Assembly: GCA_019828565.1 (NCBI GenBank)
Contig: JAHDYR010000033.1
Span: forward strand, 160,369 to 224,368
DNA: 64,000 bases
Direction: 5' to 3'
From: Carpediemonas membranifera BICM
Taxonomy: Eukaryota; Protista; Fornicata
The position numbers were made by a program, and so were the translations under genes. The notes under the pieces were generated by a model. The model was not told the DNA's origin, did not search any database, and was given only the letters and a program-made list of their open reading frames with translations. Shown in pieces: positions 14,086 through 53,800 of the stretch (the stretch's first letter is position 1; each line of letters starts with the position of its first letter).

Positions 14086-14105
14086 TAGTTTGGAAGTAAG
14101 CTTAC

Positions 14106-14213
14106 TGTGATCACTAAGGAAAAAGACTTTACAAAGAGAGCTCGACACAAGGGTGTCGAGCTGGACGGATCAAGACCGTATCAAATACGTATCTCATATA
14201 TAAATGGCTGACA
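14106..14213 (-). repeat. 5' LTR of G1 (108 bp, TGTCAG...ATCACA), followed by palindrome GTAAGCTTAC (14096-14105)
   Basis: TGT/ACA termini, homology and near-equal length to LTR 21189-21295, and an outer end that abuts the truncated RT of G2. Confidence 0.75.
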
Positions 14214-16461
14214 GACCTATCCAAAGCGTTCCACCAGATCATAATCAACCAGGACTCGCGCAAGTATACCGCTTTTGTGGCTGGTGGGAAGAAATACCAG
14301 TATAAGCGGATGCCCTTTGGGCTTCGTAATGCTCCCATCCACTGCCAGAAAGCCATGGAACACATTCTGGGTCAATCCCTTTATACTCAGTGTCTCGCTT
14401 ACATAGATGACATTGTCGTCTTTGGAGCGAACCGTGACGAGTTCCTGAAGAATCTGGAGGACGTGTTAGCTCGCATCCACGCGGCCGGTCTGAAGCTTAA
14501 TCCTTCCAAGACGGTCATTGGAGCGACTTCCATCGACTATTTGGGCTGGCGAGTAGACAAGGACGGTAAGCGGATCTCCCCCGACCGTCTGGAGGCCATC
14601 CATGATCTCAAGGAGCCGACTAGTCTGACGGACGCCCGAGCCTTGCTCGGGTTCGCGAACTACTTTCGAGCACTCATTGAGCGTTACGTCGATATGACTG
14701 AACCCATCACCGAGCTCACCCGAGCCGCCGAAAAGTTCGTTTGGGGCGACCGACAACATGACGCGTTTGAGCAGATTAAGCGAGAGCTTCTACTGCAGCG
14801 CACGCTGGTCCACCCCTGTCCCGACGAACATCTCCACATTTTTACGGACGCATCAGACTACGGCATTGGTGGCGTGCTGATGAACGCGGAGTTTAAGCCC
14901 ATCGCGTTCTTCGCCAAGACGCTCACGCCCCAACAGCGCCGTTGGTCTACGATAGAGAAAGAGTGCTACGCTCTGTACTTCGGTACTACCAAGTTCAGAC
15001 GCTATCTCGCTGGACGAGACTTCACAGCTCATCTAGATCACCGTAACTTGGTCTACATGGACCGTTCCTTGAATTCCAAGGTGATTAGATGGAGCCTCGC
15101 GCTGTCTGAGTACTCATTCGACATCGTACACGTTCCAGGTTCCGACAACTCTGTAGCGGACACCCTGTCCCGCCTCGTTCACCTGGACGAGACCTCCGTC
15201 GAACCTTCCCCTCCACCCGAGGCGCATCGGGAATCCTTCCAAGAAGCACATGGCGGAGATGCTGGTCACCTTGGCCGTGATGCCACCTGCAAACGCATCA
15301 TAGCCGCCGACAAGGGCTGGCCTGGCATGCGCCGGGACGTTACTGCCTGGATAAGACAGTGCCCTGTTTGCCAGTTGACACGCCTCAAGCTTTCACCGTT
15401 TCCCCAAGCGACCCATCCCATGACCGGCAGCCGACCCTTCGAAGTAGTGGAGGCCGACACCATTGGTCCCCTCTCACTGCCCGGGCAACACCGCTACGCG
15501 GTTGTGATTATCGACACGTTTACTAGACTCACCCAAGCCTACCCCCACGAAGAGCACGGACGCTGTATCTGCACGTTCGGCTTTATCGACATGGATGAAA
15601 CACTATGGCTCCCCGACATGTTTGATTACCGATGGTGGCTCACAGTACCATAACAGAACCATCAGAGAATTTTGCCAAGACCACGGTATAAGACACGAGA
15701 TCGGTACGCCTTATCATCCTGCGGGACAGGGTGCTGTTGAAAGAGCGAACAAAGAGGTGAAGAGACACCTACGCGCCTGGATTCTCGAACATGACGACGA
15801 CTGGGAGGACGCCTTACCACGAATCACGAATATAATCAACAACGCACCTCTAACGGCCTCCAACCTGTCGCCGTACGAAGTCCTATACGCCAGGGACGTT
15901 CACGAACCGACTAGACAACCTTCCCTCACCGTCGACCACTTTCGTACCACCCTACGCTGTTTACAGAGCAGACAACGCGCTGTCGGTGGCCAAACTCCAG
16001 CGCAGAGCCATCCAGCGAGTCATCTCCTTGGATCCGCCGCCATGATCCAGCGCAAAACTGCCATAGGCATCGTACCCCGGGGCCCGGTCCGGGTAATCTC
16101 CACCAATCCCGACCGCCCCAACACCTACGTCGTTCAAGACCTCACCACTGACCACCGCCTGACAGTACATGCCTCTGAGCTTTACCAGTTCGAGGGCAGC
16201 TACACTGACGCTGAGCTCAAACACTGGGCAGCCCGCAACGAAGGAGAGTACGTGGTTAGGAAGGTTGCTGACCATCGCCGACAAGCGGGCAACCTTCAGT
16301 TCCTCCTCTTGTGGGAGGGCTACGATGACGACGAAGGCACATGGACCGATTACAGCCGCGAAATCGATGGATTAGCTGCCCTGGACGCATACATTAATGA
16401 GCATCCGAGATTGAAGCTTCCATCGCTCAGGAAGGGACGCCACGCCGGTAAATCCCCCTGA
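14214..16461 (+). mobile_element. Ty3/gypsy chromodomain element G2, 5'-truncated pol (RT-RNase H-integrase-chromodomain)
   Basis: It starts at DLSKAFHQ and carries YIDD, TDASDYGIGG, ADTIGP, TDGG, GAVER and YVVRKVADHR..LLWEGY. There is a frameshift near 15550. Confidence 0.93.
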
Positions 16462-16601: not shown

Positions 16602-19600
16602 TGTGCCCTTAACCTGCGGAATTCGTAAAACAGTCTTTATCATATTTCTGGGCCCTAGCACGGCACAGTATCGATACTGCCGATTCAAATGAAGACTCTT
16701 ACAATTGACACCCCGTTCGCCGTCGAGAGAGCACTCCAGGAGTACCTCTCGGCGATGCCCCACGAGAAGAATCCAATTTCGTTCTTTAGGGCATTGTCCC
16801 CCGAGACAACAGAAAAACTTCGCGCCCAGTGGCGCCCAACCACTCTTTTTGACACTTTCGAGGACCTACAACGAACCGTTCTGTCCGATTCCGATGCTCG
16901 CCGCGCGGCGAACACAAGCTCTGCCAGTACTGCGGCACGAGCCCGTACAACGAAGACCGACAACCTCACCGCCATCTGGGTAGAGGAGGTACAGAAGACC
17001 ATAAGAAAAGCCACGTTCGCCGCCTGTAGCGAGTGTGCAGCTAAGCACAAGGACCCCACCCTGACAGCAATGACCCGGGAGTGCCTTGAAGCTCAACATC
17101 CCCAGATACTGACTGACTGCGGCAAGAAGGCCCGCGACTTCTTCACCCAGCTGACCGACGACCACGACATCGCAAACGTCGAGACAGTCGCACGGCCTGG
17201 CAACCTGACCGGCCCGGACGGCGAAGACGTCTCGGTGGCGTTCGTGTACATGCCCCCAGTGCCCGAGGAGACCAAGCCCGCCCCCTCCTCGGCGGCTTGG
17301 CCAGTCTTCGATGGCGGGGACGTCTACGCTTTCCTCGCCAAGGAGGCGACCTCCATCGCCCCCTACCTCGCATATACCCTCTTGACTAGTACGGACCCGG
17401 GCGCAAGAGCCAAGCTCCTCAAGGCAAAGCTCGACAACATCACGCTATACGGTCCGGAGCCCCGGCACCGAACGGCCGTCGAGAAGGCACGTAAGCTCAT
17501 AAGCGCCCTCAACCCAGACATCAAGGACGTCCCCACCATCTCCGCAAAACTGCTCGAGCGGATCATTCGGGACTTCGCCACTAGAGGTTTCTCCAAAGAA
17601 GCCGAGGATGTATACGAAGAAGAGATTGAGGACTACTCCGACAAGATCAGCGAACTTCTCGACAAACTACGCGACTTGGATGTTGATCACGACGAGAACA
17701 TCATTATCCCATGGCGTGCCTTCAGACTCGCCAGCCCACAAGCCGACAACAACGAGCAGGCGTCGGGCACTTCAGGCAGGAAGCCGCTCGCTCGCAGGCT
17801 CGATGGTCGCGATCCGTTCCAGCAGTTCAGGGACAAGACCAAGTTCCGCATGCCTCCTTCCCACACGAGATACTGCACACAGCATGGCTGGAACCCGCAC
17901 CACGAGACGAAGGACTGCAGGTTCCTCATCAGACGGGAGGCTTACAAGGCCCAAGAACGCCAGCCACAGACCGAGAAGCGTCAGGAACGCAGACCCGAAG
18001 AGCGGCAAAAGCAGCCCGGCAACCGCGCACGCCCTGTGGCGCCCACCAGTCACCAACAGTCGGATCGCCGGGCCGGCCGCATGGACCTCCGCCCCTCGTC
18101 TACCCTGAAGAACCCCCGCCGCGTCGATGAGGTGTTTGACGCGGATGAAGCGTCTCATTCGGAGTTGGAGAACGAAGTCTACGAGATCGAGGACATCATA
18201 CTCGACAAGGACCCGGTGAAGGTCCCGGCTGTTATCAACGGCCAGCACATGAACGTCAAGTTCGACATCGGCGCTTGCACGTCGGTCATATCAGCCCCTG
18301 CCCTCGCAGCGATCCCCCGACGTGACCCTGATACCGACCTCAGTCGAACTTCTCGGCGCTGGGGACGATATCATCTCCACTGGCAAAGCCGCCAAGGTCT
18401 CGCTGACCCTCCCCAGTGTCGACGGAAAGACCGTGACCACCACTGCGTTGCTCATGGTCACGAAGGGCCAGAGGAAGAAGGTCCTCATTGGACGCGATTT
18501 GCTCCGCCGCCTCGGCTTCCTGCTGAACGACCGGCTACTAATACCGTCCGCTGACCCGATCGATGACGACGACGGCCTGGGACAGCACCCCTACCTCGAC
18601 TCGACAACAGAAGAAGTCGACCCCGAGGAAGAGTGGCGCAAGGTTAAGCTGCCGACCGAAGAGAACCCGGAGCTGGCTGCCTGGCTGACCGACTTCCTTC
18701 GCGAGCGCAAGGCCGTGTTTGGCCCTCTACCTCCGGATGGCAGCAGGATGCCGCCACACGAGATCGTCGTCGATCCAAGCCGCCCTACACCCAGGGCCCG
18801 ACCCAGGCCGTTGAAGGGTGACCCGGGAAACTCAGCCCTCGCGGAGATCGACAAGATGCTCAACCAGGGCGTGATCCGAGAGAGTCAAAGTCCGCACTCT
18901 AGCCCGCACGTCATGGCAAAGAAGAAGAGCGGCGAAGACCGCTTCTGCATCGCTTACAACGTCTTGAACAACGCCACCATCGACGACCTGTACCCCACGC
19001 CGGACATCCGATCGTTTGTACACGAGGCGAGCGGATGCTCCGTGTTCGCGGCGCTCGACCTGCGCAGCGGATACTGGCAGCAGAACATGGCAACCGATAG
19101 CATCCCGCTCACCGCATTCACCGTCCCGGGCGGGCATTACGAGTTCTTACGTACACCATTCGGGCTGAAGAACGCCCCAGCAAAGTTCCAGCGAGCCATG
19201 GACGAGATGCTCGCTGGTATCGACGGTTCGAGAGCCTATATCGACGATATCTTTGCGTACGCCCGCTCCATTCAGGATTTCAAGTCGACCCTCACCCAGA
19301 TCTTCGACCAGTTGGAAGCTTACGATATCAAACTCCGCGCCGACAAGTGTGCCATTGGCATGAAGGAGGTTGAAGTCTGTGGGTTTATAGTCAACGAGTC
19401 TGGCAGGTCGGTTTCCCCTCACGTATCGCAGCCATCCAGGACCTCACACCCCCAACGACGACAACGGAGCTGCGCCGCACGCTAGGCAAGTTCAACTATC
19501 TGTCAAACTATATCCCACACCTCGCCCACGCATCAGCCCCGCTCAACGCCCTCCTAAAGGGATCGCCGCAGAAGTCGGCCCCCCTCGATTGGACTGCCAC

Positions 19601-20820
19601 TGAGGACGAAGCATTCGCCCGTATGAAGACCCTAGTAGCCGAGCACACCGCCCTCGCGCTCCCAGACCTGAGTGCAAAGTGGACTCTCGAGACCGACGCA
19701 TCGTCGACCGCCATCGGTGGTGTACTGTGGCAGGGCGAGGGTGACGAGAAGGTCCCACTCGCCTTCTACAGCAAGACCCTCGACGAGACCCAGCAACGGT
19801 GGTCCACGGTGGAACAGGAGCTTTTCGCCATTGTCTATTGTGTAACGCGACCAGAGTTTTCCCCCCTCTTCAAGCTGAAGCCGTTCGAGCTTCGCACGGA
19901 CCATCGTAATCTGATATGGCTACTCAGGAAGACAGACGAGGACGGCACTAAGAAACTGACACGATGGCGACTCACCATGACAGAGTATCCGTATAACGTC
20001 ACACACATAGCTGGAGCGCAGAACCTCGTAGCCGACGCACTGTCGCGGCCATCATCTCAGCGCAAGAACGAGGTGCGCCGCTCGATCGACCACGTCACCA
20101 CGACGCGCCAAGAGCAGATCACCAGGGCGCACGCCGGTGCACAGGGCCACGTCGGCCCAGACCAGACCATCGCCAATCTGAAGCAGTCCGGTGTCACGTG
20201 GCCAGGCATGTCGGATGACGTCCGCGCGACCTTACGCCAGTGTCCAATCTGTCGCAAGACAAAGCCAGCCCGCAAGGAGCCGATCAAGTGGCACTCTACT
20301 CAGCGCATCCGCCCATTCGAGACGGTGCAGGTGGACACCATTGGCCCTTTGCCCGAGAGAGACGGTCTCAAGTACGTCATCACGGTGGTGGACGTGTTCT
20401 CGAAGTTCACCATATTGAAGCCCACACGGTCAACGAGCGCAGCCGAGGCAGCAGCCGCATTGCTGGAGATCTGGGCGACTTTCGGCGTCCCGGCCGAGCT
20501 CCAGTCTGACCAAGGTACACAGTTCAGGAATGCCCTAGTCGAGGAGATGAACGAGCGACTGAGCCTCAAGCACCGGTTCAGTACGGCATATCATCCGGCC
20601 AGCAACGGCGTAGTCGAACGCCTGAATGGTACCGTCATGAGACGCTTAAGAGCGCTCCTGCTGGACGCCCGCGACGACAACTGGCCCGCATACCTGCCCA
20701 TCGCCCAGCACGTTATCAACGCCACCCGCCACTCCACCACAGGCCTCAGCCCCTTCGAACTATTGTTCGGACGCAAGTCAACCATGCTGCGCGTCGCGCC
20801 CGACGCCCTGACCAACGCAA
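16602..20820 (+). mobile_element. Ty3/gypsy element G3 with 66-bp 5' LTR (16602-16667), 3'-truncated within integrase
   Basis: LTR TGTGCC...GGCACA has perfect 6-bp terminal inverted repeats. Gag starts at 16689 with CTQHGWNPHHETKDC, followed by protease FDIGA, RT YIDD, RNase H and an integrase DDE core. Confidence 0.93.
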
Positions 20821-20840
20821 CCCAGATGCTCGAGCACTGA
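16689..20840 (+). CDS. G3 Gag-Pol in three frameshifted pieces (16689-18554, 18322-19485, 19623-20840)
   Basis: Domain order Gag-PR-RT-RH-IN is continuous. The shifts fall at C-runs near 18315 and 19415. Confidence 0.88.
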
Positions 20841-20845
20841 GCCCG

Positions 20846-21295
20846 GCTCGAGCATCTGGGTCGTTAGCTGGAAAAGACGGCGCTCTAGGATCGGATCAGT
20901 GGGCTTAATTGCGTTAGCAATCGCTCTGAAAACGAGGTCCTCTCTCTCATGTTTCTTACGCTTCTCGCCCGTCACTGTGTTGTGCTTCGCGCTCTTGTAT
21001 GTCTTGGCTACGTCTATACCAACTGCTGCACAGTATGAGGTGACAGCCGGACCCAAACGCTTGATAAGTCGGCGTTTTCCGCCCGTTCGGACATGGCGTT
21101 CGAGTTTCTCCTTAAACGAAAGCAGAGCATTAATCTCTGGTTGAGTACATAACGGACCCTTGTCCTCAGTCATTGTAAGTAACGTTACTGTGGGTTCGTG
21201 AGAACAAAGCTTTACAAAGAATAGAGCTCGACACCCATGTGTCGAGCTGGACGACTCAAGACCTACCTATTAAATAATCTATTGATGAACCAACA
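20846..21295 (-). mobile_element. G1-family fragment G1b: 107-bp 5' LTR (21189-21295) plus Gag N-terminus (ATG 21173)
   Basis: Gag DKGPLCTQPEI..SF.EKL..HVR.GGKRRL.KRLGPAVTSYC matches G1. LTR TGTTGG...CCCACA is followed by GTAACGTTAC (21179-21188). Confidence 0.88.
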
Positions 21296-21819: not shown

Positions 21820-23271
21820 CAGGGTGCTCACCGTCTTCACGGACAACTCCACAGCCCAGGCTTGGGTCAACCGTCAGGGCTCTACGCACGCGCCCCAAGC
21901 TGCGATGGATCTTGTGCAGGAGCTTCACACTCTGCTCGCAAGCCGCAACCTTATCATCAAGGCCGAGTTCACGCCGGGTCGAGCCAACATCCACGCAGAC
22001 CGGCTGTCTCGCAACATAGAGGTGCCTCCGACACTGACAGAGCAGCTCCTAGCTCTGTGGGGGCCGGCCAACACCATCTGGGAGGGCGACGGCCCGAAGG
22101 TCTGGCGCGGTCGTCGAGTTCTGGTGGTGAATACAGCAGTGACGAGAGCAGTGACGAGTCTATGTCTCAAGGCTACAGCTCCGACAGCACCTACGTCCCA
22201 TCCGAGGACCTGGACCTCGTCGATATTCCTCCTCGTGAAAGACACTATGTCGCCAGAGTTGCGCCTCCTCAAGCAGGCAGCTCGCCTGAAGCGCTACTTC
22301 TCGACAACCGAGCCCCAGAGCGGCATGAAGTCGAGGTACATCGGTCTGGCCCTTCCAACCTGTTCGAAGGAATCAGACTATCTGATCAGCTCTCGCACCT
22401 CGAGGAGCAAGGAAGGCGAGCGGTCGCCGGCTGGGTTACCAAGTTCATCGAGAGTAGAGATCCGAAGCTGTCCCACGCAGCCCAGTTCAGGGCATTCCTG
22501 CTCAAAGAGGGAAGGAACTCAGGGCCGGACTCGGTCGGCCGCAAGGCTTACTGGGTCATCCAAGCAGCCCCGCGATGGTCTAGCTGGAGAGTTCCTCTCG
22601 ACGCGCAGGCGATCCAGAAAGAAGCCCGCAAGAGAGCTACCCTGAAGGGTCTCACCGGAGGGTCACGCCCAGTCTACAGGATCGAGATGAGCGACGCCAT
22701 CGCGAACCGCAACAGTTCTATTAGGGCATACCAGGCAACCCTGTTTGCGTCCATGTGCTACTTGACGGTCAGTAGAGGAAGGGAGATCTTCACGCTAACG
22801 CCCGGGCGCATCACCTTCGAGCCTAACGGTGACGCCACACTCGGCATCCCTCGTACCAAGACCATGATAGGGGTGGCTAAGAGACTCCCTAACGTCTGGA
22901 TCCTGGGTTTTAACCCAGCTAAGGCTTTACAGCGCTGGCTGACTGGCCTATCTCTTCCGGACGATGCCTGCATGTGGCGGGAGGTGACTCCCCGCAATAC
23001 GCTCAGTCGTCGCAACCCACGGTCAGCTAGGGGTTTGCTGCAGGACGTGAAGCGCTTATTCGGCCCAAGGTCGGGCTGGCATTCGTTCCGCAAGGGTGCC
23101 GCCTCGGAGCTTGCCCTATGTGGCACGCCTCTGGAGGCTCTGCTCGCCATGGGTACCTGGCGGGAGGTTCGTAGTTTGCGCTCTTACATCGGACAGGCTA
23201 TGCGCAACGAGCCTCTCTTCGTCCGCGAAGCGACAAGGAGTCTGCTGCGGCCTAGCGCGAAGCGTCTTTAA
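21820..23271 (+). mobile_element. DIRS-type retroelement remnant D1: RNase H end, degenerate MT-like region and overlapping tyrosine recombinase
   Basis: FTDNSTAQAWVNRQGS...PGRANIHADRLSR lies in 21824-22645. YR motifs LTVSRGREI, KT, WHSFRKGAA and MGTW..SLRSYI lie in 21862-23271. Confidence 0.9.
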
Positions 23272-23590: not shown

Positions 23591-24952
23591 TTGGCGGACC
23601 ACTGTCCCCACGCGCGTGCATCCGTGCCCGGATGCGCGGCGAGCGCATGCTGCGGAGAGCAGCACAGAGAGAGGAGCCAGGGAGGCTCCTCCCCTCTTTT
23701 CCCAATCTGGGCATCGTCCCCTGCTGGTGGACGCCCATTTGGTCGTCGGCGTCTGCAGTGCCATAAACACTATTTGGGATTGTCTACAGTTGTAGACGTG
23801 CGCCGCACGCTGGTATGGCAAACCTGCCAACCCCGTCGGACAAGCGTGGTCCGGTTGTGCCGTGCCTTTGGGGCGTGCTAGCAAAACCTGGTGAGGAAGT
23901 ATTTAATAGATTGCGATACGGTGCCGCGGGCCAGCCGGGACCGTATCGTATCGGCTAAAAATAAATACTGATCGAGCCTAGAGTGGCATCAGCCATGACA
24001 CTACCCCTCCCAGAGCGTCAGCTCGCATGTGCATTGGCATCTCTGGGCGCGTTGGGCTGTTACATGTTTTGTCAGGTTAGGCTAAAGTGCAGGCTAAGGT
24101 TTCGCAACGGGGGGCATACGAAGGTGGGGACAAAAAAAATGAACAGCAGGGCAATCCGTCTAGGCTTGTGTTGTAGTGCTGTGGTGACGTAGATGGTTCT
24201 TGGTTGGGCCTGTAGCTCGAGTGAGTGACGCTAGCGTCGTCGATGATGAGTGAGGTGAACTCCTAGAAACCTCGTGGAAGTTGAAGTAGATAGTTCTAGT
24301 AAAGGTACTGTATCTAGTTGCGTTGTTGTTCTCGTGATCCGAAGGGTATTTGCTGAGATATTCGACGTTTTGTCAAATTTTGCTGAGAAAATGGGAAGAT
24401 GAGGTCGCTATGAGGTTGGTGATGGAGATAGGGGAAATGTGATCGTGGATTTGAGAAGTAATTACTTTGTTGTACGGTTCTCCATGACCTTTTCCGCGTC
24501 AAAGGGCGTATAGCTTGTGGGGTGATGATCGTTCGATTCTGGAAATGAGCTCGTCATGCGTCAGAGTCGATTCACGATGAGAGCAGTAAGAGACCGGGGC
24601 ATACGAGCTGATTGCCGGTCCTGGACCGGTTGAGTGCCCCTTTGGGGGGTATTTTGACCAAGTCGGAAAGCTTCGAAATGGTTCAATGACGGTGGTGTAG
24701 TGCGGTAATGTGGCTTAGAAACCGTTGTTGAGGGTGAAACGTCTTGATTAAATGACATTTGTTGTGTTTGTCTGCTTCTGGATGGTTCTTCAGCTCCAGA
24801 AATAGAGTGTTGTGTGAGTGAGAATAAAACGAGGGCCTTTGGGGCCGTTTCATGAGTGATTTGTGATTGTTTTGGCGGCTTTATGTACACTTACGCTTGC
24901 CAGCCTTTCTTTTTGATGTATCTGTTGATCTTTGGTGCCTCTGAGGGGTAGG

Positions 24953-27900
24953 TGTCCCAATCAATTGATTAAATCTCTTTCGCTAGCTGTTCTATCCATA
25001 CCACAGTGATCACTGTCATGGTTTTAGTCAGCAACAGCCGTTTAGACGAGTATCGTCTTCACGTTGCAAGCAAAAAGCAGCCGTCTAGCATCCTCTTTTT
25101 CCTCGGGAGCGAGAAACTAGCCGAAATCCGCGCGGCGTTCATCCCGACAACGAGATTCCCAACATTCGAGGATTTCCAATGCTTCTTTGAGACAGAGATC
25201 CGTCCTCCCATTCATAAGCCTTCCGAGCAGAATGAACCCGAGAAGAACGACGACGACAAATCGGCCGAGGAGCTCAGCGCTCTCCTGGCCAAGCTCAAGG
25301 ATATAGACACCCAAGCGGCCTCGATCGCTTCAGACGAGCTGAAGCAGGCCTTCATCACCGCAGCCCTCAAGGCGGTCAGTCCGCCACCGACGGCCCCAGA
25401 CACCTCGACCAACGCCTCAGAGCGCCTCTCGAGGGAGGAGCTCCGCGAGCGGGCGGACCTCTTGCTCACCTACACCGCGTACTTCGAGCTGACACCCGCC
25501 CAGCGGGCCAACCCAGCCGCTCGCGCGGCGGCGATCCTGGAAAGGACCACGCTCACAGGTGGAGACATCACCTCTATGCAGAAGATGTTCCTAGCTTTCG
25601 GCAAGCACTGTCGCCAGCTGAACCCCAAGTTCCCGACAGAAGAAAACGGTTACACGCCCCTCACCGAGAAGAGGCTGATATCCACGCTTTTCCGCGTGCT
25701 GACCCGCGGTTTTGACGTCACCGAAGCCGCCCTCGCCTTCGAGGATTTCGCCGACGGCGCCACCACCATCGATGACGTCCAGCACCGCATCCTGGCTTTG
25801 CCAACTAACTCCGATGGGACGATCGTCACGCCTTGGTCCTTCTGCCAGAGGACCTCCGGTCCCATGGCAGGCGCCAAGGTCCCCGCTACACCGGGCAACG
25901 GCCGCAAGACCTGCCGCGTCCACGGTCCCGGCGGCCACTCTACTGAAGAGTGCCGGCTGCTGAAGCGCCAGAGTCAGGCTAACAGAGCCACACCGGCGGG
26001 CCGCCAACCTCAAGATCCCCGCCAGGGCCAGGCCTCTCAACGCACACCACACCAAGCCTCAGCCGCCCAGCAGAACCAGTCACGCCAGCCGCAGGCAGTT
26101 GGTCCCCAACGACAGGCCGCTGGACAACCACAGCAGCCCCAGCAACCATCGACGTCGAAGGGTCCTTGGCAGTTCAGGCAGAACCCCAAGCAGGCCACAC
26201 CATTCACACCGACACCCCCCAACAAGCCCCAACAAGGCAGCGTTCAGAACGTAGAGCATGCCGAGCACGCTTACTCGCCGGGCCGGCTTCTCCGGATTCC
26301 AGTGACGATAGGTGACACGCTTATCTCAGCGACGGTCGACCCTGGCTCCGTAGTGTCCACCATCTCGCTGGACCTCGCCAACGCACTCGCCCAGTTTGGC
26401 AGGAGGGGCCCCGACATGGTCCAGCTGACGGGCCCTGACGACCAAGGTCTCCAGCAACACGGCACCTTCGAGACAACGCTGGTCGCGGACCGCTTGGGCG
26501 ACCGCCGAACGATCATCGATTGGCCCCTGCCCGTCATCAGCGGCAGGGCCGATAAGGTCCTCATCGGCTCGGATATATTGTGGTTCTTAGGCCTCATGTC
26601 CGACGAGGGCATCATGCTTCGCCTCCGCCCGCAAGTTCACGACGGCGAGGACGAAGGCCTCCCCGACGACCAGACCGATGACTTCCACGCAGTCAACAAC
26701 ATTGTCAGCGACGACGCGGGCCCACTTGGCACACGCATCGCAAGCGACTTCCCGCTCAAAGCCGAGATGGCTGATGTCATCCGCCGGCACGCACCGGTAT
26801 TCGGCGAGCTGCACCCTGACGGCGCCCAGATCGCCGCCGCAACGATTGACATCGTGCCAGGCGCACCCCTACCCAACCATGCCCCTCGACCGCTCACGGC
26901 ACCCACCGCCGAAAGAGTGCACGAGATTATCGACGACATGGACAGACAGGGCATCGTACGCGATTCCTACAGCCACGTGGCATCCGCAGCCGTCATCGTA
27001 GTGAAGAAGTCAAGCGAGTTACGACTTTGCGCCGACTACCGCGAGCTTAACTCGGTAACTACACCAGACAGGTTCCCCCTCGCAGATATCCGCACCTTCA
27101 CCAACGACTTCATCGGTGCCAAGTACTTCTTCGCTTGTGACCTCCGGTCAGGTTTTCATCAAATGCCAGTACGCGAAGACCACAAGTACCTCACCGCTAT
27201 AACGCTGCCAGGCCGGTTCAAAGAGTACAACTTTGCACCCTTTGGTCTTCGTAACCTACCGTCACAGTTCCAGCGGGCCATCCAGGCAATCCTTGCCCCT
27301 GTGCGCGCCGACGGTACGAAGAACTACATCGACGACATCTTTGGTCGAGCCAAGACACCTCAGGAGCTTCTAGACCACGTCGACCGCCTACTCTGTATCG
27401 CAGAGGAACGCAACGTCCGCCTCCGCGGCGACAAGTGTGTCTTCGGGGCGACGTCTATCGAGATCCTCGGCGATATCGTCGATGGCAAGGGCCGCCGCAT
27501 GAGCCCTACTCGTGTCAGATCCATGCAGGACCTCGCCGCACCTCACTCGGTCAAGGACCTACGCATGATCATCGGTATGTTCACATACCTCAGTGACTAT
27601 ATCCCCGACTGCCAGACACGCCTCAAGCCGCTCCAGGCCTTGGTCAGCAAGGTCCCACCCTACACCTTCAACGACTGGGACGACACGCTTCAGGCTCTGT
27701 TTGATCAGCTCAAGCAGGCCGTGACAGACGAAGAGGTCCTCGCCCATCCGGACCAGAGCAGGCCCTGGCGCCTCGAGACCGACGCCTCTCTCGAAGGCAT
27801 CGGCGGTGTCTTACTGCAGCTTGACTCGGACAACACATGGCGCGTCGTGTCATTCTTCTCAAAGGTCTTCAACGACACACAGTCGCGTTGGTGCACGTAC

Positions 27901-29477
27901 GACCAGGAGCTGTTCGCGATCATCTACTGCCTCACTCGGCCTGACCTCTCGCCCATCTTTAGAGTCCACCAGGACCTGACGATCTGGACGGACCACCGCA
28001 ACTTGGTCTACCTGCACTCCAAGGCTGGCCAGGAAAACCGTAAGCACCTCCGCTGGCTGCTTATGATCCAAGAGTTCGAGTTCGTCATCAGACACATCGC
28101 AGGCGCGCAGAACACACTGGCCGACGCACTCAGTCGATACAACCCGCAGGCCACAGTCACGCAGGTCAACAACGTCTCAGAGGCCGAGCTCGACGAAGAC
28201 GCCAAGCGCAAGATCGTGCAAGAAGCTCACCGATACCACGAGGGCGAGCAGGCCACCATCAGGAACGTCCGCCAGCTTGGGCACGATTGGCCAGGCCTCC
28301 ACTCCGACGTGCACGCAGTCGTGTCAACCTGCGTGTACTGCGCTAAGGCACGCCTCTCCGCTTTCATTAAGACCACAACGCAGTCTTCTCTGCGCGACCG
28401 ACCCTTCCAGACCATCGCTGTAGACACCATGGGTCCTTTCCCTGTCGACTCCGAGGGTTTCAGATACATCGTGGTGGCAACCGACATGTTTACCCGCTTC
28501 ACGGAGCTCATCCCCACAGCTTCCAACAACGCGACGACGGTCGGGCTGGCACTTTGGTCCATCATCGGACGCTACGGTGTGCCTCGCGAGTTCCTTTCGG
28601 ACAACGGCCCCGAGTACCGCAATCGGATGATAGAAGCTTTCCTTGATCGCTTGCAGGTCACGTACCACCGGACAATCCCTTTCCACCCTCAGTCAAACGG
28701 CCTGGCCGAGAGACGCAACCAGGAAGTCAAGCGACACTTACGTGTGCTCTGTCTGATGTTTGACCGTTACGACGCCTGGGCCTCCGTGGTCCCATACGTC
28801 CAGTACATCCTGAACACTACGGTCCACTCCGTCACCGGCGGTCGAACCCATTGCTCTCTTGATGGGCAAGCATGCCTCCGCTCGCGACTTCACGATCGCA
28901 CCCAAGGAGGAGGGTAGAGTTCATACTCCCCTGGACGACATAGCCTCCTACATCGACGCGCTCACCGAGCACCTCCAGATCCTCGCCGACCAGGCCCTCA
29001 ACCGCCAGCAGGCAATGACAAGGACCGCAGAGCCGACGCCCCCGATCGAGCCGGGCACTCTGGTCCTTCGTAAGAACGAGAGCCCCACGAAGCTACACGG
29101 CCACCGCGGCCCATTCCGCATCACAGCCGCCGACGGTTACGCAGCGGAGATCACGCCGCTCACTGGCGGCAAGAGCCGCCGGGTCCACCTGAGCCAGTTA
29201 ATCCGCATCTGCCAAGGCCCCCTCAGCGACGCCGAACTGTTGCGCATCGCGGCTACCGACGACGAGGAGTATTACGTCGAGAAAGTCCTAGAGGTCGACG
29301 ACGAGACTGGCGACCTCCTCATTAAGTGGCTCGGCTTCCCTGAGGCTAAGGCCACGTGAGAGGGTCCCAACTCTGACGCCGCCCGCACGTCCGTCGTGCG
29401 CCGTCACCTCGAGGAGAGGGGTAGTGTCCCAATCAATTGATTAAATCTCTTTCGCTAGCTGTTCTATCCATACCACA
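24953..29477 (+). mobile_element. Complete Ty3/gypsy chromodomain LTR retrotransposon G4 with 53-bp LTRs
   Basis: Identical LTRs at 24953-25005 and 29425-29477 (TGT..ACA), GTAGG target-site duplication (24948-24952 / 29478-29482), and PPT gaggagaggggtag at 29411-29424. Confidence 0.97.
25018..29359 (+). CDS. G4 Gag-Pol (single ORF to 28917; frameshifted integrase C-terminus and chromodomain at 28859-29359)
   Basis: CRVHGPGGHSTEEC, VDPGS, YIDD, TDAS, VDTMGP / SDNG / NGLAER, RGPF and YYVEKVL..IKWLGF. Confidence 0.92.
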
Positions 29478-46457: not shown

Positions 46458-47681
46458 CTAAACAATCGGTCTCATGCCCTCTACTCGCTTATAGACAACC
46501 TTACATTTGCTGCAGAGGGGAACGATGTACAACTTGCCATCAATGGTGTACTGCACTTCCTCAGAGCAATGCTCACAGTACCACCAGTGACAGCCTCGGC
46601 AGCAAAGAAGAGTAGAAGCCTGTTCTTCTGCTTTCTTCGTGTTCTTGGATCTTAGGCCCTTTTTGCACGCCTGGCACTTGTTGCTAGAGCCGGTAATATA
46701 GCACGCGGGACAGTAGTCCTTCTTGCCCTTCGTCCTGACACATTGCTCGTGCAGGAAACCTTTGCAAGCACAGCATCTCCTGAACGTAGTGCCGTCTGGA
46801 TTGAAGAACCACTCGGGGGTACCACACACAAGACATCCAAATAGCATTTTGCGCTGATGAAGGCTAAGGAAAGTCGTCTTACATGTCTCGGGTTCGGTAG
46901 GCGGGTCTCTCACACGGGTCTCTGAGACAACGTCGTTGATCAGGACCTTAATACGGTCAACAACAGCATCGGACACGTTGTTAGACACCTGCTGCAGATC
47001 GTCGTCACCAAGCCTGGGTCGCTTGGCTTCCTCGTCGTCAAAGACGATCTTCTTCCGAACCGGCACCGATCGATCTGTCGTTGACTGAGGTGTGTCTGCT
47101 TCATCACCAACACCAAGTGAAGACAGTTGCGTAGTCGACCGTATCGGTGGGATCTCTGCCTTGATCATCGTAGTCGGGGTCGATTTGACCGTTGCCTTTT
47201 GCTTGACAGGCTTATATCTCACCCGGTTGATCACAGGCAAGTTCTCAAGGCTGATTGAGTCGGAAACATCGTTCAGTCCAGCATCTGAGAGAACTTCTGA
47301 GAGCATCTGGCGGAACTCGGCATGGCAGGGCTGACTACGGACAGCAATGTGCTGCATGACAGAGCCATTGTACTCCGCAGAGGGTCTAACTGCTGTTATA
47401 AACGTAGTAACGCCGACAACAGTCGTCCGCCTGACCTGTTCCCGGAGTTCAATTGACTTGAACCCAGGGCATTCGGCGGCGACCCTGCGCTGGACCTCCA
47501 GAAGTACCTTATGGATGTCGCGTGCACTCAAGCCGAGGTCAGTTGCCTCGTCGTCCTCAAATACTGAAGAAACAACGGCTGTAACAAATGAACGACGGAG
47601 ATTTGCGAGCTTACTGTTGCCATACTGTCTGATGGGGGGCGTAGCAGCAATAGGTTCTGGTACAGACACTTCTGAATTCAT
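46458..47681 (-). CDS. PHD/zinc-finger protein (paralog of 35439-36723)
   Basis: CLVC...CCACKGFLHEQC...YCPAC followed by CQAC..CRGC..CEHC..CSKC. Confidence 0.8.
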   Translation of the reverse strand: MNSEVSVPEPIAATPPIRQYGNSKLANLRRSFVTAVVSSVFEDDEATDLGLSARDIHKVLLEVQRRVAAECPGFKSIELREQVRRTTVVGVTTFITAVRPSAEYNGSVMQHIAVRSQPCHAEFRQMLSEVLSDAGLNDVSDSISLENLPVINRVRYKPVKQKATVKSTPTTMIKAEIPPIRSTTQLSSLGVGDEADTPQSTTDRSVPVRKKIVFDDEEAKRPRLGDDDLQQVSNNVSDAVVDRIKVLINDVVSETRVRDPPTEPETCKTTFLSLHQRKMLFGCLVCGTPEWFFNPDGTTFRRCCACKGFLHEQCVRTKGKKDYCPACYITGSSNKCQACKKGLRSKNTKKAEEQASTLLCCRGCHWWYCEHCSEEVQYTIDGKLYIVPLCSKCKVVYKRVEGMRPIV

Positions 47682-48139: not shown

Positions 48140-50660
48140 GTATGAGAGCAGGAATTTCTGGGAGCCGTCGTCAATTCAAGAGAGATGTGCATCAAACTCA
48201 CCGAAGCCAAGCGCAAGAAGTACAAGAACGCCGTGGACAACATTTTAAGAGAAAGAAGGTTCTTTATAAGCGAACTAAGCCGGCTGGTCGGAAGACTGAC
48301 CTTCACCAAGGTGTGCTGCGGCACAACAGCGCTCATCAGGGTCAGGGAGCTCTGCATCGCCGCACAAGGTCTCAAGAGGAGCAAGAACCCCAGAGCCACT
48401 CGAGGATGCCTCTCAGAGGCAGCGATAGCGGACCTTCAGTGGTGGAGCCGCAAGCTGGAGACGATCCCGAGCTGCCCGATCAGACCACCCAGGAGCGCCA
48501 CAATAAGGGTCGAGAGCGACGCATCAGACGAGGCGGCCGGGGCCATCGTGTTCCGGGGACCGGCGCTGGCCAGGTCGTGGTCACGCCAGTGGACGAAGGA
48601 CGAGCTGAAGATGTCAATCAACGCGAGGGAATCTTTGGCGGCCATGGAGGCAATCATGGCCATGCTGCAGACGGAGGACTCGGCCGTCATACTGCTCACG
48701 ACCGACAACATCTCGGCCCGCAAATGGGTGGCGAAGAGCGGCACGAGGGCGCCCAAGCAAGTACGAGCGCTCGCCCGGGCATTCGGAGATTGGTTAGACC
48801 AGCACAAGCACAAGCTCATCGTCAGATACCAGCCAGGGCCACTGAACTGGCAGGCCGACAGAATATCCAGACCGAGATCCTTCCAAGTCGGGCACTTTAT
48901 CCCGACAGAGGTACTGCTGGCAGCGTCATGGAGATGGGGTGCAGTGGAAGAAGACTTGTCAGAGCAGCAGCTGGAGCCGCTCACGGAGGAGTTGAGAGGA
49001 CGGCGACTGCTCCTATGCCCCAAGTTACAGGCTCCTCGGCAGATACACACAGAGACTGGCCGAGATCGCACGCAACACAGAGACCCCACCAGCACTTCAG
49101 GACAGCGGAGTCATGTTAGTAACGGTCAAGGTCCGCAACAACCACCAGCTCACACTCAGGAAGATCGCCCAGAAGTCAGTCGTGGTCAGCGTGAACAGAG
49201 AGGAGTGCCCGCAGGAGTGGCGTGCCCTCTCATGGAACAGATGGAAGATACAGCTGGTCGCATATTGGATCGCGACCTGAGGGCAGCGGGCGTCAACATT
49301 GGCAGGATTAGCACAGCATCAGCCGCAACAAGGAGAGATCGCGATATCCACGTGGACAGGACGGTGCAGAGCCGAGTGAACACCGCTCTCTGCCTGGTCA
49401 AGTACTCCCAAGCCGTGAAGGACGACATCGCCCGCGAGACAACAGCCTACCTCACCTATGCCCGCGGTGCACGAGAGAGACCCAGCCTGCCGCCCGCCCT
49501 GGAGAAGCTGTGGGTCGTGATTAGCCTGCATGGAGACCTCTTATGGAACTATATGATGATTGAGGGCCAATACTGTGCGGGTGCGAGGGTCTCGACTAAA
49601 TTCTCACGGATCTGTAAAGGTCTGGGGGCAATTGGTCAACCAAGAGGTCTGCACGCAGAGGACCAAGACGTGATAAGGGCAATAGCGAAGGCGGCCAGCA
49701 GCACTAGGGGAGCACTCGAGAGGAAGCAAGGCAGAGCACTGCCCATTGAGTGGAGGTGGATAGAGCGAAGTATCCGATCGTATGAACGATGCAAGCACAC
49801 CCCACACCTGGTCCAAGCTGTGACAATAGCTCTGCTGGCATTCACGACAGTCTCGCGGCTGGGGGAGGTCCTAGCGCTCAGGCGTGAGGACGTTCTACAG
49901 GTCGACGGGGCGATAGTACTGCGCTTTAGGACGACTAAGACCAGACAGAATGTGCTCAAGGCGGTACCGAGAACGAAGACGGAGACATGCCCGACAAGGT
50001 GGCTCGTGGAGCACCTCAAGTCGGTACGAGATGGACCGCTCTGGCGCGAGTCTGTGGCCGACGGCAAGCCGATCGCAAGAGCCCCTGGCCGGGACCCAGG
50101 CGAGGAGGTGGGAGGTGATCGAAGATCTCCGCGAGCTGTTACACCTGGACATTTCTGGCCATTCATTCAGAAGGGGCGGCGTAGTCGAACTCGTCAGAAG
50201 AGGAACACCATTGACAATAATTCAAGCGTTAGGTACCTGGAAGTCGAGTGAGTCAGTATTAGCATATTGTGAGGAGGCGATACGTCTGGCCCCGGAGATC
50301 GCCCAGCTGACCATGGGCTAAAAGATTGGATTTGATGACGGTTGGCACGGAATGGGATGTTACACCCTGTTGCCTGTTGCCTGTTCAGGCCGTGCATAGC
50401 ACGTTGGCAAGGCCAGCGGAGCCAACACTTCGGCGCGAGAGGTCGAGGATGATTCGATACGATCTCAAAGACGGGATCGTGCGTCTCATAAGGGCGGTTC
50501 AGTTGTTCAAGAGCGAACTGAAACCGCGGGGCAGCCTTGCTCCCGATCCCCTCCTTCGGAGGGTGACGCTCGGCATCACGTAAGGTCGAGCGAGGTAATT
50601 TACTCCGGCTTACGCAGAGTTAGACCCGGGACGATGCGAGAACGCGACACAATAAATTAC
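48140..50660 (+). mobile_element. DIRS-type element D2, 5'-truncated (RT end, RNase H, MT-like remnant, tyrosine recombinase to 50321, structured 3' region)
   Basis: EFLGAVV, ESDASDEAAG, INARES, TTDNISA, NWQADRISR, TVSRLGEVL, KT and GHSFRRGG..LGTWKS..LAY. Confidence 0.9.
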
Positions 50661-50826
50661 CCCCCCCCTGTGGGAATGGACGGAGTCTACCGGATTGTCA
50701 GCCTGTCTGACTGACAAGGAGAGCGAAGCGTCAGTAGTTCGGCGCAGGTGGCCGAGGGGATTTAGATTCGGTCCTGATTTGGTCTGGCTCTGTGGAGTCG
50801 ATCGAGATCGAATCGAAGAGGCCTAG

Positions 50827-53800
50827 ATGGAACGGGAGCAAGAAGAACAAGCCCAGCAAGGGCAACATGAGTAGGAGGTGCTCAACGCCCCAATTGAAGA
50901 GGAAAAACCAGTAGCTGAAGAACTACAAGCCCTACGGGCGGAGCTCGCTGATCTTAGAGCCGAGCGAGCACGCAACCATTGGATCAAGCCTTCAGCGGGC
51001 GCCATGCGTGAGGAAGCCGACTTCCTTGAACGCCTGTACCGTGACCTGCGCTTCAACCGCGCGACCTCAGGCGATGTCGTCCTCAACCGCCTCTACGCCC
51101 GGCACCGCCTCCTCTGGGCCAAGGACCGTTATGGTTATGAGGTCTCCCTCTCTATCAACGCCGTGATCGAGGCTGAGCTGGCCAGAGAGCCCGAAATCGA
51201 TGAGGATCAACTCGAGTCTAAGATCCTGACGGCCCTCTCAAAAATTCCCCGCCTCGGAGAGAAGGAGCGCACACGCTCTTCTTTTCAGAAGAGGAAGCGC
51301 GCCGGCCCTCGGCAGCATTAACGAGCAAACCCGATCAAGATGCATTTTACCCAACACCTCCTTCAGATCCTCCTCCTTCCCCACCTCCTCTTCCCCCTTC
51401 CTCACCAACGCCTCCACAACCGAGCTACGACATCCCGTCTCACCCCGCACGCCCTGTAGACGAAGAGCCTCTATCCTATCCCTCCAACGCGGACAAGACC
51501 TTTCTCTCCATGAATCTGCGGTGGAAAACATGGCAGCGCTTTGGAGCGCCCTCCGAAGTGGTACAGTGGCTCAGAGAAGGCGTCCCGATCACAACAACAG
51601 CGACACCGAAGCGCCCCAGCCTCCAATGCGCCAGAAAGGACCAGCTAAGACACTTCCGCGCTCATCTTCGAGAACTTCTAAGGGTGGGCGCGGCATCCCC
51701 AGTGTCGTGGGTCCTACCCACAATTTACATAGTTAACATTTACATAGCCATGTTTCTCGACACACAAGTGGCAACCCCCTTCTTTGTTCTAAACTCTTTT
51801 CTTCTTTTGAGGTTAACGGACCACATTACTAGTAATCAAAGCCAGAAAACCGAAATGCAGAAGAAACAACTCATCCCTCCGCTGTTCAAGACGCCGTCTG
51901 TCTCCGAGCTGATCAGCTTTGCCGAAAAGTTCCGAGACTACCGCGCAATGGGAGGTAAGCGATCGATCGACGCAATGATCGACCCCGCGATTAAGGACCT
52001 ATTCCCTGTCGATGACGAAGACGAGACCCCACTTATTCTTAGCAAGAAGAAAGCTCGCCGCGAGCATCGGGACAAAGTGGTCCTCAAGCGCCTCGGCACA
52101 ACGCTGAAGCCCCGTAACTTAACAGCTCAACTGATGCCATTCCGCCTCCACGCCTCCGACTTCTCGGTTATGGAGGTCGCCCGCGTCAACCGCCGCTTCA
52201 AGCTCGTCCTCGCCCTATTCCAAGACGACAGCCTTCTAACCGATGTGGTCGTAACCCCGTTTTTAACAGTATGCAGACTCGATTGCCGCAGCCGCCTGGA
52301 TCAACAAGCAGGGGTCTACATCCGCCCCGTCCTCCGTCATCACAGCGCTTCAGAGCCTACTCCCAAGACTGGCAGAGGCGGCCATCAGCGTCCACGCGGT
52401 TCACACACAAGGCCATATGAACGTGGAAGCAGACGCTCTCTCACGCTTCGCAAAGCTCGACTGGCAGACCCCAAGGGGGATGCTCGCTTGGATCCAAAGG
52501 GCGTGGGGCCCAGTACAACTGGACGCCTCAGGACACCCCCAGAAGGAGCTCCTACTCCCAGGATTCGCCTCGCAGTCCCTGTCGTTCACGGACAGAGGCC
52601 TTCAGGCAGAGTGGCGCGGGTCAAGGGTGTTCGTCGCTCCACCATGGGCCATGCTCCCGGCGGTCGCCGCAAAGCTGGCCAGGATCCGGCTGCCCACCTC
52701 CACCAGACACCCAAGATCAGTTGCATCGGCAGTCATCCTGGTCTGCCCGGACATTGCGTCGACGGCAACGCTGTGGCTGAGGCGACAGGCTCACTGCAAG
52801 CGCTTCTTTCGAATCCCGCGCGATCAACTGGTCAACACCGAGTTGGAGCGGCTGCAGAGCGACGGCTCCATCCGCATGCTCGCACTATTCATCGAGACGA
52901 GATCTTTGACAGAGCAGTCGCCCATTCAGTACTAGCCGGCTACTCCGAGGCATACAGGCGCCACATCGCAGGGACAGTGGCACAGTTCGCCACATTCAAC
53001 AGCGACCTCCCGCTCAGCTCGGACGAGCTTGTCTCCCGGTGGGCTGCAGAGCAGGCAACCCATGTAGGAGAGGTCACGCTACGAAGCAAGGCCTTCACCA
53101 TAGCCCGGTTCACACCCCTTTTAGTGGGCGAGGTCTCCCAGTTCATATCCCAGCTGGCGCAGCAGCATGCCAAGCAAGCTAGGTCCGCACCAAGAGGCCC
53201 TGCGGTTCCTATCCGCGCGCTCATCATCATAGACCGCTGGGGCTCGGCCACGCCCGAGCAGAGGGCCGACCCCTGCTGGCTGCAGGCCTTCTACTTCGGC
53301 GTCATCACTTACGTCACGACATCAAGGCCTGGTGAGATCTTCTCGCTGACTCCGGCCGACGTCGCCGGCAGACCAGGTCGTGGTCTGAGGGTCTGCATCC
53401 GTCGGACTAAGACCGGCATGACGAACGTGTACAAGGTGGTCCCGAGGCTGGGCGATGCCCCCTTCTGCCCGGCCACTTGGCTTCACGCCCATGCTCGTAA
53501 CCTCCCTAGTAGCCAGCGTCTCTGGCGGGCCCCTGCCAATATCCGAGGAGACCTATCACTGTCGACTGAGGTGTCCTATGCCGTGCTCGAGGACCAGGTT
53601 AGGGGGGTCTTCGGCAAGGTGACGCGATTGCACGGATTCCGCAGAGGATCAGCCGCCGACCTCCTCCTGTGTGGCATCCCAGTAGAGGTTGTCGCCGCGA
53701 AGGGCACCTGGGCGACGACGGTGAGCCTTATCCGCTATGTGGGCGATACCCTGCGCCTTGATGGCGCCTCCTCCGCAACCCCACTGAGGAGAATGTTAAG

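Follow-up and report, generated by a model that had tools for sequence, protein, structure and literature searches.

Retroelements fall into main lineages that are defined by how they prime reverse transcription, a step at which the host can also exert control, for instance through small RNAs that originate from the 3′ ends of tRNAs. Self-priming of the Tf1 type involves a duplex of ~11 bp. Retroviruses carry, besides their tRNA primer-binding site (PBS), a distinct dimer initiation site in the 5′ leader, a palindrome of 6 nt in a loop. In Tf1, the 11 nt at the start of the element's own transcript, inside the LTR, anneal to the PBS (Levin 1995, as recounted in PMC5006619 and PMC6934838). In the Skipper chromoviruses of dictyostelids, the TGG-type PBS has been lost and the LTR holds no complement; the authors suspect a novel form of self-priming (PMC5006619). 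Fungal Ty1/copia elements of the GalEa group have no tRNA-type PBS and carry a Conserved Hairpin Site (Donnart et al. 2017, PMC5445492): the sequence following the 5′ LTR is palindromic when the terminal A of that LTR is counted in, and includes 9 conserved nucleotides, two variants of which, CTGATCAGT or CTAATTAGT, account for 85% of the families. A second, inverse-complementary copy (CHSeq2) lies 12–41 bp downstream and yields a hairpin, the LTRs measure 138–311 bp, and the mechanism was left unexplained (PMC5445492). This fungal site is the only close published precedent that we found for the arrangement described below.

Carpediemonas membranifera is a free-living metamonad. The stretch of its genome analysed here, 64,000 nucleotides in length (the window), contains five perfect palindromes exactly where a preliminary description had located them (Table 1). 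Their positions stand, but their lengths had been underestimated: each spans 12–14 nt and takes in the final 1–3 bases of the preceding CACA-ending repeat. As described, the first ATG follows 4–19 nt past the 8–10-nt core, and the centres of G1 and G1b differ by a GC-to-CG swap which leaves both self-complementary. In none of the five does a TGG lie within 8 nt of the point where the repeat ends. All five had been attributed to LTR retrotransposons with a palindrome at the junction. This attribution holds for G1, G1b, G3, and G4, chromovirus-like Ty3/gypsy elements in which the palindrome marks the junction of the 5′ LTR and the leader, but not for G5, which encodes a tyrosine recombinase.

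Table 1. Coordinates of the retroelement features in the window
Feature	Position	Strand	Remarks
G1 internal region	10125-14085	-	gag (zinc knuckle), protease, RT, integrase, chromodomain; Pfam, tblastn
G1 palindrome	14095-14106	-	AGTAAGCTTACT; gag ATG 14085-14083
G1 putative 5′ LTR, ~108 bp	14106-14213	-	CACA end by analogy; start from TGT and similarity to G1b
G2, 5′-truncated gypsy pol	14169-16451	+	RT to chromodomain; Pfam, tblastn
G3 putative 5′ LTR, ~66 bp	16602-16667	+	TGTGCC...GGCACA; putative start
G3 palindrome	16666-16679	+	CAGTATCGATACTG; ATG 16689
G3 internal region	16689-20840	+	gag, RT, RNase H, integrase in three frames; Pfam, tblastn
G1b fragment	20859-21295	-	putative 5′ LTR 21189-21295 and ~320 nt of gag
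G1b palindrome	21178-21189	-	AGTAACGTTACT; ATG 21173-21171
G4 target-site duplication, left	24948-24952	+	GTAGG; same 5 nt at 29478-29482
G4 5′ LTR, 53 bp	24953-25005	+	TGT...CACA; identical to 29425-29477
G4 palindrome	25003-25016	+	ACAGTGATCACTGT; at PBS position, overlapping final 3 LTR bases
G4 gag-pol ORF	25018-28917	+	RT, RNase H, integrase; Pfam, tblastn
G4 polypurine tract	29411-29424	+	GAGGAGAGGGGTAG; adjoins 3′ LTR
G4 3′ LTR	29425-29477	+	identical to 5′ LTR
G4 target-site duplication, right	29478-29482	+	GTAGG; matches left copy
G5 palindrome	51825-51836	+	ATTACTAGTAAT; inside or beside tyrosine-recombinase retroelement; LTR end there not demonstrated
G5 ORF	51856-53813	+	shared 'X' domain and tyrosine-recombinase region; tblastn; DIRS/Ngaro-like

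The boundaries of G4 are proven, as had been claimed, by two identical 53-bp repeats, the GTAGG pentanucleotide flanking both sides, and a polypurine tract in front of the 3′ copy. Because the LTRs are identical and the target-site duplication is present, a recent transposition of an element with the palindrome architecture is indicated. The best PDB match of G4 is the Ty3 Gag-Pol (E 5e-69); the reading frame breaks near 28840, and the C-terminal ~170 codons resume in another frame (28847–29359), with no match to this C-terminus in the Pfam search. Oddly, a 9-nt string matching the polypurine tract is also found directly upstream of the G4 5′ LTR.

The other gypsy elements of the window are damaged. 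The internal region of G1 is split over at least three frames, and its putative LTR contains the hairpin AGCTCGACAC-N4-GTGTCGAGCT. G1 has inserted into G2, the 5′ junction of which is gone, whereas the G1b fragment, 69% identical at the nucleotide level to positions 13780–14177 of G1, cuts off the 3′ end of G3. The pol order protease–RT–RNase H–integrase, recovered by Pfam on G1, G3, and G4, assigns them to Ty3/gypsy (Metaviridae); Pfam Chromo matches, for a chromodomain at the C-terminus of the integrase, were obtained for G1 (E 1.8e-9) and G2 (E 4.9e-7) and also in relatives. Direct TG...CA LTRs, target duplications, and polypurine tracts are present in G4 and in its relatives (L001, L016, L030, and a solo LTR). 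The LTR ends proposed for G1, G1b, and G3 fit the pattern proven in these relatives, and in the case of G3 another element (L019) is identical over the final 12 nt of the LTR and the palindrome; the LTR starts are still putative, as the window has retained none of the matching 3′ LTRs.

The placement of G5 among Ty3/gypsy LTR elements was rejected: its ORF contains a tyrosine-recombinase region and no gypsy pol. This ORF shares 28% identity (E 2e-22) with a recombinase ORF at 21862–23268, which itself has a weak Pfam Phage_integrase match (E 2.6e-4; 21.2 bits, under the 27.1-bit cut-off). Related ORFs in two other elements (L026 and L008) join RT, RNase H, the X domain, and the recombinase; G5 itself is devoid of RT, and the window holds no second copy of its putative 'LTR'. 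Judged by its sequence, G5 is a DIRS/Ngaro-like tyrosine-recombinase retroelement.

For comparison, we considered ~20 more families from contigs probably belonging to Carpediemonas frisia, from Aduncisulcus paluster, and from environmental contigs. The resulting set of 22 junctions (window elements and fetched relatives) represents 21 distinct sites, with three environmental elements added separately. All relatives with a readable 5′ junction have an LTR of 53–128 bp followed directly by a perfect, family-specific palindrome of 10–14 nt. In 22 of the 22 junctions, the first 1–3 nt of the palindrome belong to the LTR and its centre lies 4–6 nt beyond the LTR end, and the placement is the same in the three further environmental elements. 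Perfect palindromes of at least 10 nt occur at a background rate of 1.2e-3 per centre across 188 kb (the window and the fetched loci), and a chance origin of the junction palindromes is excluded. The LTR ends are proven by L001 and L002, in which identical 5′ and 3′ LTRs are accompanied by polypurine tracts ending in GGGGTAG and by differing 3′ flanks; the same motif is found in the polypurine tract of G4 and ahead of the 3′ LTRs of relatives. Furthermore, a solo LTR is bounded by a 5-bp duplication (ACATT), and L016 and L030 by 4-bp duplications. These copies put the boundary exactly where the preliminary description did, and no palindrome follows the 3′ or solo LTRs in the flanks of the relatives inspected.

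The symmetry of the site is strict. Arm positions 1–5 are Watson–Crick paired in all 21 distinct sites, with 3–4 pair types per position and without a single G–T pair (pairing is 100% Watson–Crick); the final A of the LTR (position −1) pairs with T in 22/22, and shifting the partner by one base leaves only ~20% pairing. Cores are 8, 10, or 12 nt long, and sister families differ at most positions. In the RT tree, sister families possess different yet perfect palindromes, with symmetric changes that extend to length, and the same palindrome reappears on distant branches; on this tree, which includes no Tf1/sushi reference sequences, the trait may have had a single origin or multiple origins. Short cores reach further into the LTR (4/6 versus 2/16; Fisher p = 0.025), which would bring the primer–template duplex to ~11 bp.

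The other primer types examined left no trace at these junctions. TGG was found within 8 nt of the LTR end in none of the 22, and no site matches tRNA-Gln or tRNA-Glu, the two host tRNAs compared. Complementarity to the LTR, as would be expected for pairing with the transcript 5′ end, shows no excess (mean longest complement of 4.8 nt versus 4.7 nt for shuffled LTRs), and no second copy of the palindrome exists within 70 nt downstream or elsewhere in the element, matches being as in random windows. Ordinary PBSs are detectable by this method, since a canonical 22-nt tRNA-type TGG site was recovered in a more distant relative (L034). The compared junctions thus share one anatomy, keep their symmetry, and lack the alternatives tested. 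The non-tRNA priming mode suggested earlier outlasts these in silico refutation tests, with the reservations that the cut and the priming between co-packaged copies are conjectural, that G5 does not fit, and that GalEa provides a precedent. As in GalEa, the palindrome takes in the terminal A of the 5′ LTR and replaces the PBS; however, the present elements belong to gypsy rather than copia, display ~20 fast-evolving, family-specific sequences instead of a conserved one, have no second copy of the site, and possess shorter LTRs. They also differ from Skipper, where a polypyrimidine stretch is found in place of a palindrome.

We propose, with moderate confidence, that the palindrome is a tRNA-independent PBS that most likely acts in trans, between a pair of genomic RNAs. 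Because the palindrome is family-specific and nothing else could match it, the partner would be this very site on a second genomic RNA of the element. The steps that we infer, namely, pairing in trans, a cut, its position, and the enzyme responsible, would proceed as follows. Two co-packaged genomic RNAs would join via the palindrome in a 9–13-bp duplex, for which predicted energies are −8 to −22 kcal/mol, versus 0 to −2.8 kcal/mol for the hairpin. A cut would then be made in one strand, at a point of the right arm that faces the U5 end; the RNase H of the element is the probable agent, as in Tf1. The new 3′ OH would be extended over the short U5-R of the partner. Plus-strand synthesis would copy the primer back to DNA, so that the arms would re-template each other repeatedly; such templating of each arm from the other could account for the strict Watson–Crick symmetry despite fast sequence drift. 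The scheme has its demands. A cut just 3′ of U5 parts the leader from the coding RNA, and hence one partner or more would have to stay intact, or the steps would have to be carefully timed. Whereas the LTR always ends at CACA, the palindrome has an outer edge that shifts between −1 and −3; the cut would therefore not simply fall at the duplex edge, and no conserved motif marking a cleavage site is found among the compared junctions. More tentatively, these elements might exemplify a third mode of minus-strand priming beside the tRNA and Tf1 types, a reciprocal self-priming in an RNA dimer in which the primer is the PBS sequence itself. Similar to Tf1/sushi, they are chromodomain-containing Ty3/gypsy elements without a tRNA PBS, with a proposed primer from their own RNA, a duplex of similar length, and a presumed RNase H cut, but the LTR contains no complement to the site, which is self-complementary instead.

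In having a short palindromic site in the leader and a proposed pairing of genomic RNAs, these elements also recall the retroviral dimer initiation site. Given that such sites are short palindromes and that the predicted dimer duplex is stable, the palindrome could function solely in RNA dimerisation or packaging, with priming left to another molecule, for example, one of the small RNAs of the host or part of a tRNA. We consider this unlikely. The palindrome of 10–14 nt adjoins U5 and replaces the PBS rather than coexisting with it, and in 0 of 22 leader contexts does it lie in the loop of a larger stem. It occupies the exact nucleotides where annealing of a primer would yield the observed LTR end, an ATG follows after 2–5 nt in several families with no TGG or conserved sequence nearby, and one host primer cannot fit ~20 different sequences. 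Moreover, RNA pairing by itself would allow G–U, which was never seen.

Priming in cis appears less probable again. Here, the leader RNA would be cut after the palindrome and fold back, so that a mini-hairpin with a 4–5-bp stem and a 4-nt loop primes itself. RNAfold does predict a minimal monomer hairpin, with the central 4 nt as the loop, in 16 of 22 leader contexts, and a hairpin at the same place was proposed for GalEa by its authors (PMC5445492). However, these hairpins are energetically marginal and have no spacer, and the downstream partner sequence of the GalEa type is missing. Furthermore, a 3′ end at the outer edge would start DNA synthesis 1–3 nt inside the LTR, with loss of the terminal CA, an invariant feature of every 3′ LTR.

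Strict Watson–Crick symmetry without G–T is what a dimeric DNA-binding protein would select, and many cores resemble restriction sites. A symmetric DNA-level site for a host factor, integrase, or nuclease, unconnected with priming, is nevertheless improbable: sequence and core length vary between sister families, which a sequence-specific protein would not accept, and the elements would then be left without any primer site. Finally, ordinary priming by tRNA 3′ ends, halves, or fragments with an accidentally palindromic look is hardly credible even though tRNA priming is usual for LTR elements, considering the missing TGG, the lack of a match to the only two tRNAs compared, the ~20 sequences that are all perfect loop-free palindromes, unlike tRNA segments, and the very different appearance of the true tRNA-type PBS in L034.

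The reading of the palindrome as a PBS used in trans, if true, would apply to a lineage covering no fewer than three fornicate protists along with several eukaryotes known from environmental contigs, and the same principle may underlie the GalEa site of fungi. LTR finders that demand LTRs of at least 100 bp and a tRNA PBS will miss such elements, and for this reason the repeat annotation of metamonads is probably incomplete. The palindrome would offer a simple, testable system for priming. It would also mean that an LTR can shrink to about 50–80 bp and that a full replication cycle is feasible when the LTRs measure 53–80 bp and the leader spans a few dozen nucleotides. A lineage-wide palindrome in place of the PBS would imply independence from host tRNAs and a built-in coupling of genome dimerisation with the initiation of reverse transcription.

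In the free-living metamonad Carpediemonas membranifera, the window is a nest of retroelements, four of which (G1, G2, G3 and G4) display the Ty3/gypsy domain order RT-RNase H-integrase in Pfam searches, with significant chromodomains in G1 and G2. The top solved-structure match for G4 is the Ty3 Gag-Pol, and its gag region yielded no match as a protein query. G4 is bounded by identical LTRs with a GTAGG duplication on either flank and a polypurine tract ahead of the 3′ copy, which confirms the boundary proposed in the preliminary description; there is a frame break near 28840, and the 1.5-kb repeat copy at 62484 contains no empty site for the element. The 9-mer GAGGGGTAG of this polypurine tract recurs just upstream of the 5′ LTR, shifted by one base and overlapping the GTAGG duplication; the match exceeds the length expected by chance and could reflect target preference, the tract of an old element or aberrant end formation. 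No 3′ LTR of G1, G3 or G1b (a G1-like fragment) survives in the window, so that only the ...CACA end can be argued for these copies, and solely by analogy. The LTRs of G1 and G1b share a 10-bp stem (AGCTCGACAC / GTGTCGAGCT) with differing 4-nt loops, a conserved hairpin within the LTR.

Features of the window and of related loci. Coordinates without a prefix refer to the window, those with an L number to fetched loci outside it.
Feature	Location	Strand	Remark
G1		−	inserted in the RT of G2
G3			follows G2
G1b			truncates G3 at the 3′ end
G4			separate element, nearly intact
G4 LTRs	24953-25005; 29425-29477		53 bp each
Other LTR examples	L001:1-78; L030:216-286; L009:1-80
Solo LTR	L001:5166-5243		between ACATT duplications
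GAGGGGTAG in G4 polypurine tract	29416-29424
GAGGGGTAG, upstream copy	24943-24951
Stem in G1 and G1b LTRs	14142-14165; 21226-21249	−
Tyrosine-recombinase (DIRS/Ngaro-like) retroelements	21862-23271; 48185-50251; 51856-53813; L005:1-1220; L026:3-1412; L008:242-1882; L028:631-2866
AT-rich LTR motifs, examples	L001:20-50; L004:8-30; L006 region; 24959-24975
Junction-like site GGCA/GTATAC/TGC	9489-9500	+	47 nt upstream of a 182-aa ORF
Junction-like site AACA/AAGTAATTACTT	24456-24467	−	AAGTAATTACTT is the L020 core
ATGAATTCAT, two copies	L024:3739-3752; L024:3830-3841		flank a 70-nt LTR-like unit
(CCTTA)n	L019:~5077 onward		follows the first 25 nt of a 3′ LTR
TGG site of distant relative	L034:3740-3960
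Direct repeat pair, 427 bp	1597-2023; 7288-7704		95% identity, 5.7 kb apart
1.5-kb unit	29511-31009; 62484-64000		98% identity; 426-aa ORF without domains
1-kb tandem duplication	33140-34140; 34236-35236
Satellite arrays, 14/15 nt	1-1130		left end of the window
407-aa ORF	46461-47681	−	multicopy gene

All five palindromes previously reported at 5′ LTR ends are present and perfect, although they are longer than originally described (12 or 14 nt), because they include the last one to three bases of ...CACA. Four of the five mark LTR junctions, an association that is far above chance and lineage-wide, but the fifth, G5, is an element of another kind. The G5 ORF contains a tyrosine-recombinase region together with a domain also present in RT-RNase H-recombinase ORFs of other contigs, it is followed by no gypsy pol, and the reading frame upstream of it continues unbroken across the supposed LTR. 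We therefore assign the G5 palindrome to a DIRS/Ngaro-like element and exclude it as an LTR junction. The tyrosine-recombinase elements join the recombinase to RT-RNase H and to an unnamed domain that they have in common; in one of them (L005), several copies of a 16-nt palindrome, GAGACAGTACTGTCTC, follow the recombinase gene and may represent recombination sites.

The window holds further repeats. The 427-bp direct repeats, each containing a 16-nt palindrome (GTTGCATCGATGCAAC), enclose ORFs without Pfam hits and delimit another, unclassified repeat-bounded element. The 407-aa ORF, which shows a weak Rubicon-homology match, encodes one of six proteins from different C. membranifera contigs that cluster at 90% identity or above. 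Two junction-like sites may be remnants of further degraded elements of the palindromic kind.

The closest pol relatives (30-59% identity) were found in PPCM01 metagenome contigs, in Aduncisulcus paluster and in environmental contigs (Logan, ENA, JGI); judging from the published accounts (PMC5437931, PMC8516963), the PPCM01 contigs probably derive from the Carpediemonas frisia culture of Hamann et al. 2017. Every relative family with a readable 5′ junction carries a perfect 10-14 nt palindrome directly after the 5′ LTR, and host sequence beyond 3′ or solo LTRs lacks it. The LTRs of these relatives span 71-128 bp (53 bp in G4), run from TGT to (C)ACA and, at the 3′ end of the elements, are preceded by a ...GGGGTAG-type polypurine tract. 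The position of the LTR end is proven independently by L001, whose two LTRs agree throughout their 78 bp, whose 3′ LTR is flanked by sequence that differs from that in L002, and which also contains a solo LTR; the junction assigned in the window is thus supported by other copies. Target duplications of 4 bp were detected in L016 and L030. Although extremely short, the LTRs of this lineage remain identical between the two ends and flanked by target duplications and are, to our knowledge, among the shortest functional LTRs; they would escape standard LTR-finding software set to a minimum of 100 bp. In L019, a 3′ LTR breaks off into (CCTTA)n, possibly a repeat of telomeric type or the place where a chromosome end has healed. 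The two copies of ATGAATTCAT in L024 may stem from nested or tandem elements with a common palindrome.

Each LTR also contains one or two AT-rich motifs (TTTATAA; TATAAAT or (A)GTAAAT) located 25-70 nt before its end. These resemble two signals of Giardia, its AT-rich initiators and its poly(A) signal AGTRAAY, a lead hinting at an initiator and a poly(A) signal of metamonad type. R plus U5 would in that case comprise only ~25-45 nt, with a very short R.

Perfect palindromes of at least 10 nt occur at a background rate of 1.2e-3 per centre (188 kb, window plus loci), and yet one is found in all 22 tabulated junctions, centred 4, 5 or 6 nt past the LTR end. Because the MAFFT junction alignment was keyed on the LTR end rather than on the dyad, pairs were counted with a script that superimposed the sites at their centre. 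Watson-Crick pairs join arm positions 1-5 in each of the 21 distinct sites; every position shows three or four pair types, G-T pairs are absent, and the last A of the LTR pairs with T in 22/22 junctions; sliding the partner by one or two bases reduces pairing to 18-25%. In sites with 8-nt cores, symmetry reaches further into the LTR (4/6 versus 2/16 in the others, p = 0.025), so that the potential primer-template duplex stays near 11 bp. On the RT tree, the palindromes almost always differ between sister families, including symmetric changes in length, and the same palindrome reappears on distant branches; rooting with distant contigs did not distinguish one origin of the trait from several.

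Consistent with the proposed lack of a tRNA-type primer-binding site, TGG is absent within 8 nt of all junction sites, and neither of the only two tRNAs found, tRNA-Gln (window) and tRNA-Glu (L030), matches any of them. Rfam returned no match at the palindromes, the only match in the window being the tRNA. By contrast, L034, a gypsy element of more distant kinship that comes from a JGI metagenome and might serve as an outgroup for tracing how the palindromic type arose, carries a TGG site of the conventional sort with a 22-nt complement resembling a tRNA 3′ end, indicating that ordinary binding sites would have been detected. Tf1-type complementarity was rejected, since the pairing between site and LTR equals that in shuffled LTRs, as was a GalEa-type second downstream copy, which is absent. 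Full-text searches retrieved no account of Carpediemonas retrotransposons and none of a palindromic primer-binding site in Ty3/gypsy elements. Closest among published systems is the 'Conserved Hairpin Site' of the fungal GalEa copia elements, nine conserved nucleotides that form a palindrome together with the final A of the LTR and have a downstream partner (PMC5445492); in the dictyostelid Skipper chromoviruses, too, the TGG site is gone and a polypyrimidine stretch stands instead (PMC5006619). Lacking the defining features of both the Tf1 and GalEa types, the window elements belong to neither, and we class them as chromovirus-like Ty3/gypsy elements whose non-tRNA priming site is of a new variety.

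Because annealing of the primer fixes the LTR end, the minus-strand primer must pair directly 3′ of U5, precisely where these elements hold a sequence that changes from family to family yet is invariably identical to its reverse complement. A partner encoded elsewhere in the element would have no need of palindromy, and no further copy exists anywhere in the elements, which disfavours such a partner; judged from sequence, the sole RNA that would always match is a second genomic RNA, at this very site. Among the rivals, a mini-hairpin in cis would exploit the same symmetry, but the palindrome alone is predicted to form a marginal hairpin (0 to -2.8 kcal/mol) versus a solid homodimer (-8 to -22 kcal/mol). 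The latter would suit a dimerisation signal only, a reading that leaves aside the need for a primer at this position. A protein site at the DNA level would fit the dyad symmetry, but the palindromes differ in sequence and length between sister families. Priming by tRNA fragments is opposed by the lack of TGG, and no host RNA can match all of some twenty differing sequences.

We favour the originally suggested priming in trans, between the two RNAs of the dimer and following a cut in the right arm, a hypothetical mechanism that is plausible and survives the available tests. Two genomic RNAs would pair through the palindrome, and the right arm would be cut, probably by the element's own RNase H, by analogy with Tf1 (PMC5006619). 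The LTR end is constant while the outer edge of symmetry varies from -1 to -3, implying that the priming 3′ OH pairs no earlier than the first base past the LTR; the cut would thus fall 1-3 bases in from the right edge, which in most families lies between C and U. Should plus-strand synthesis then copy the primer back, any change in one arm would be reproduced in the other, which would account for the strict Watson-Crick pairing, the missing G-U pairs and the fast, symmetric turnover of the palindromes.
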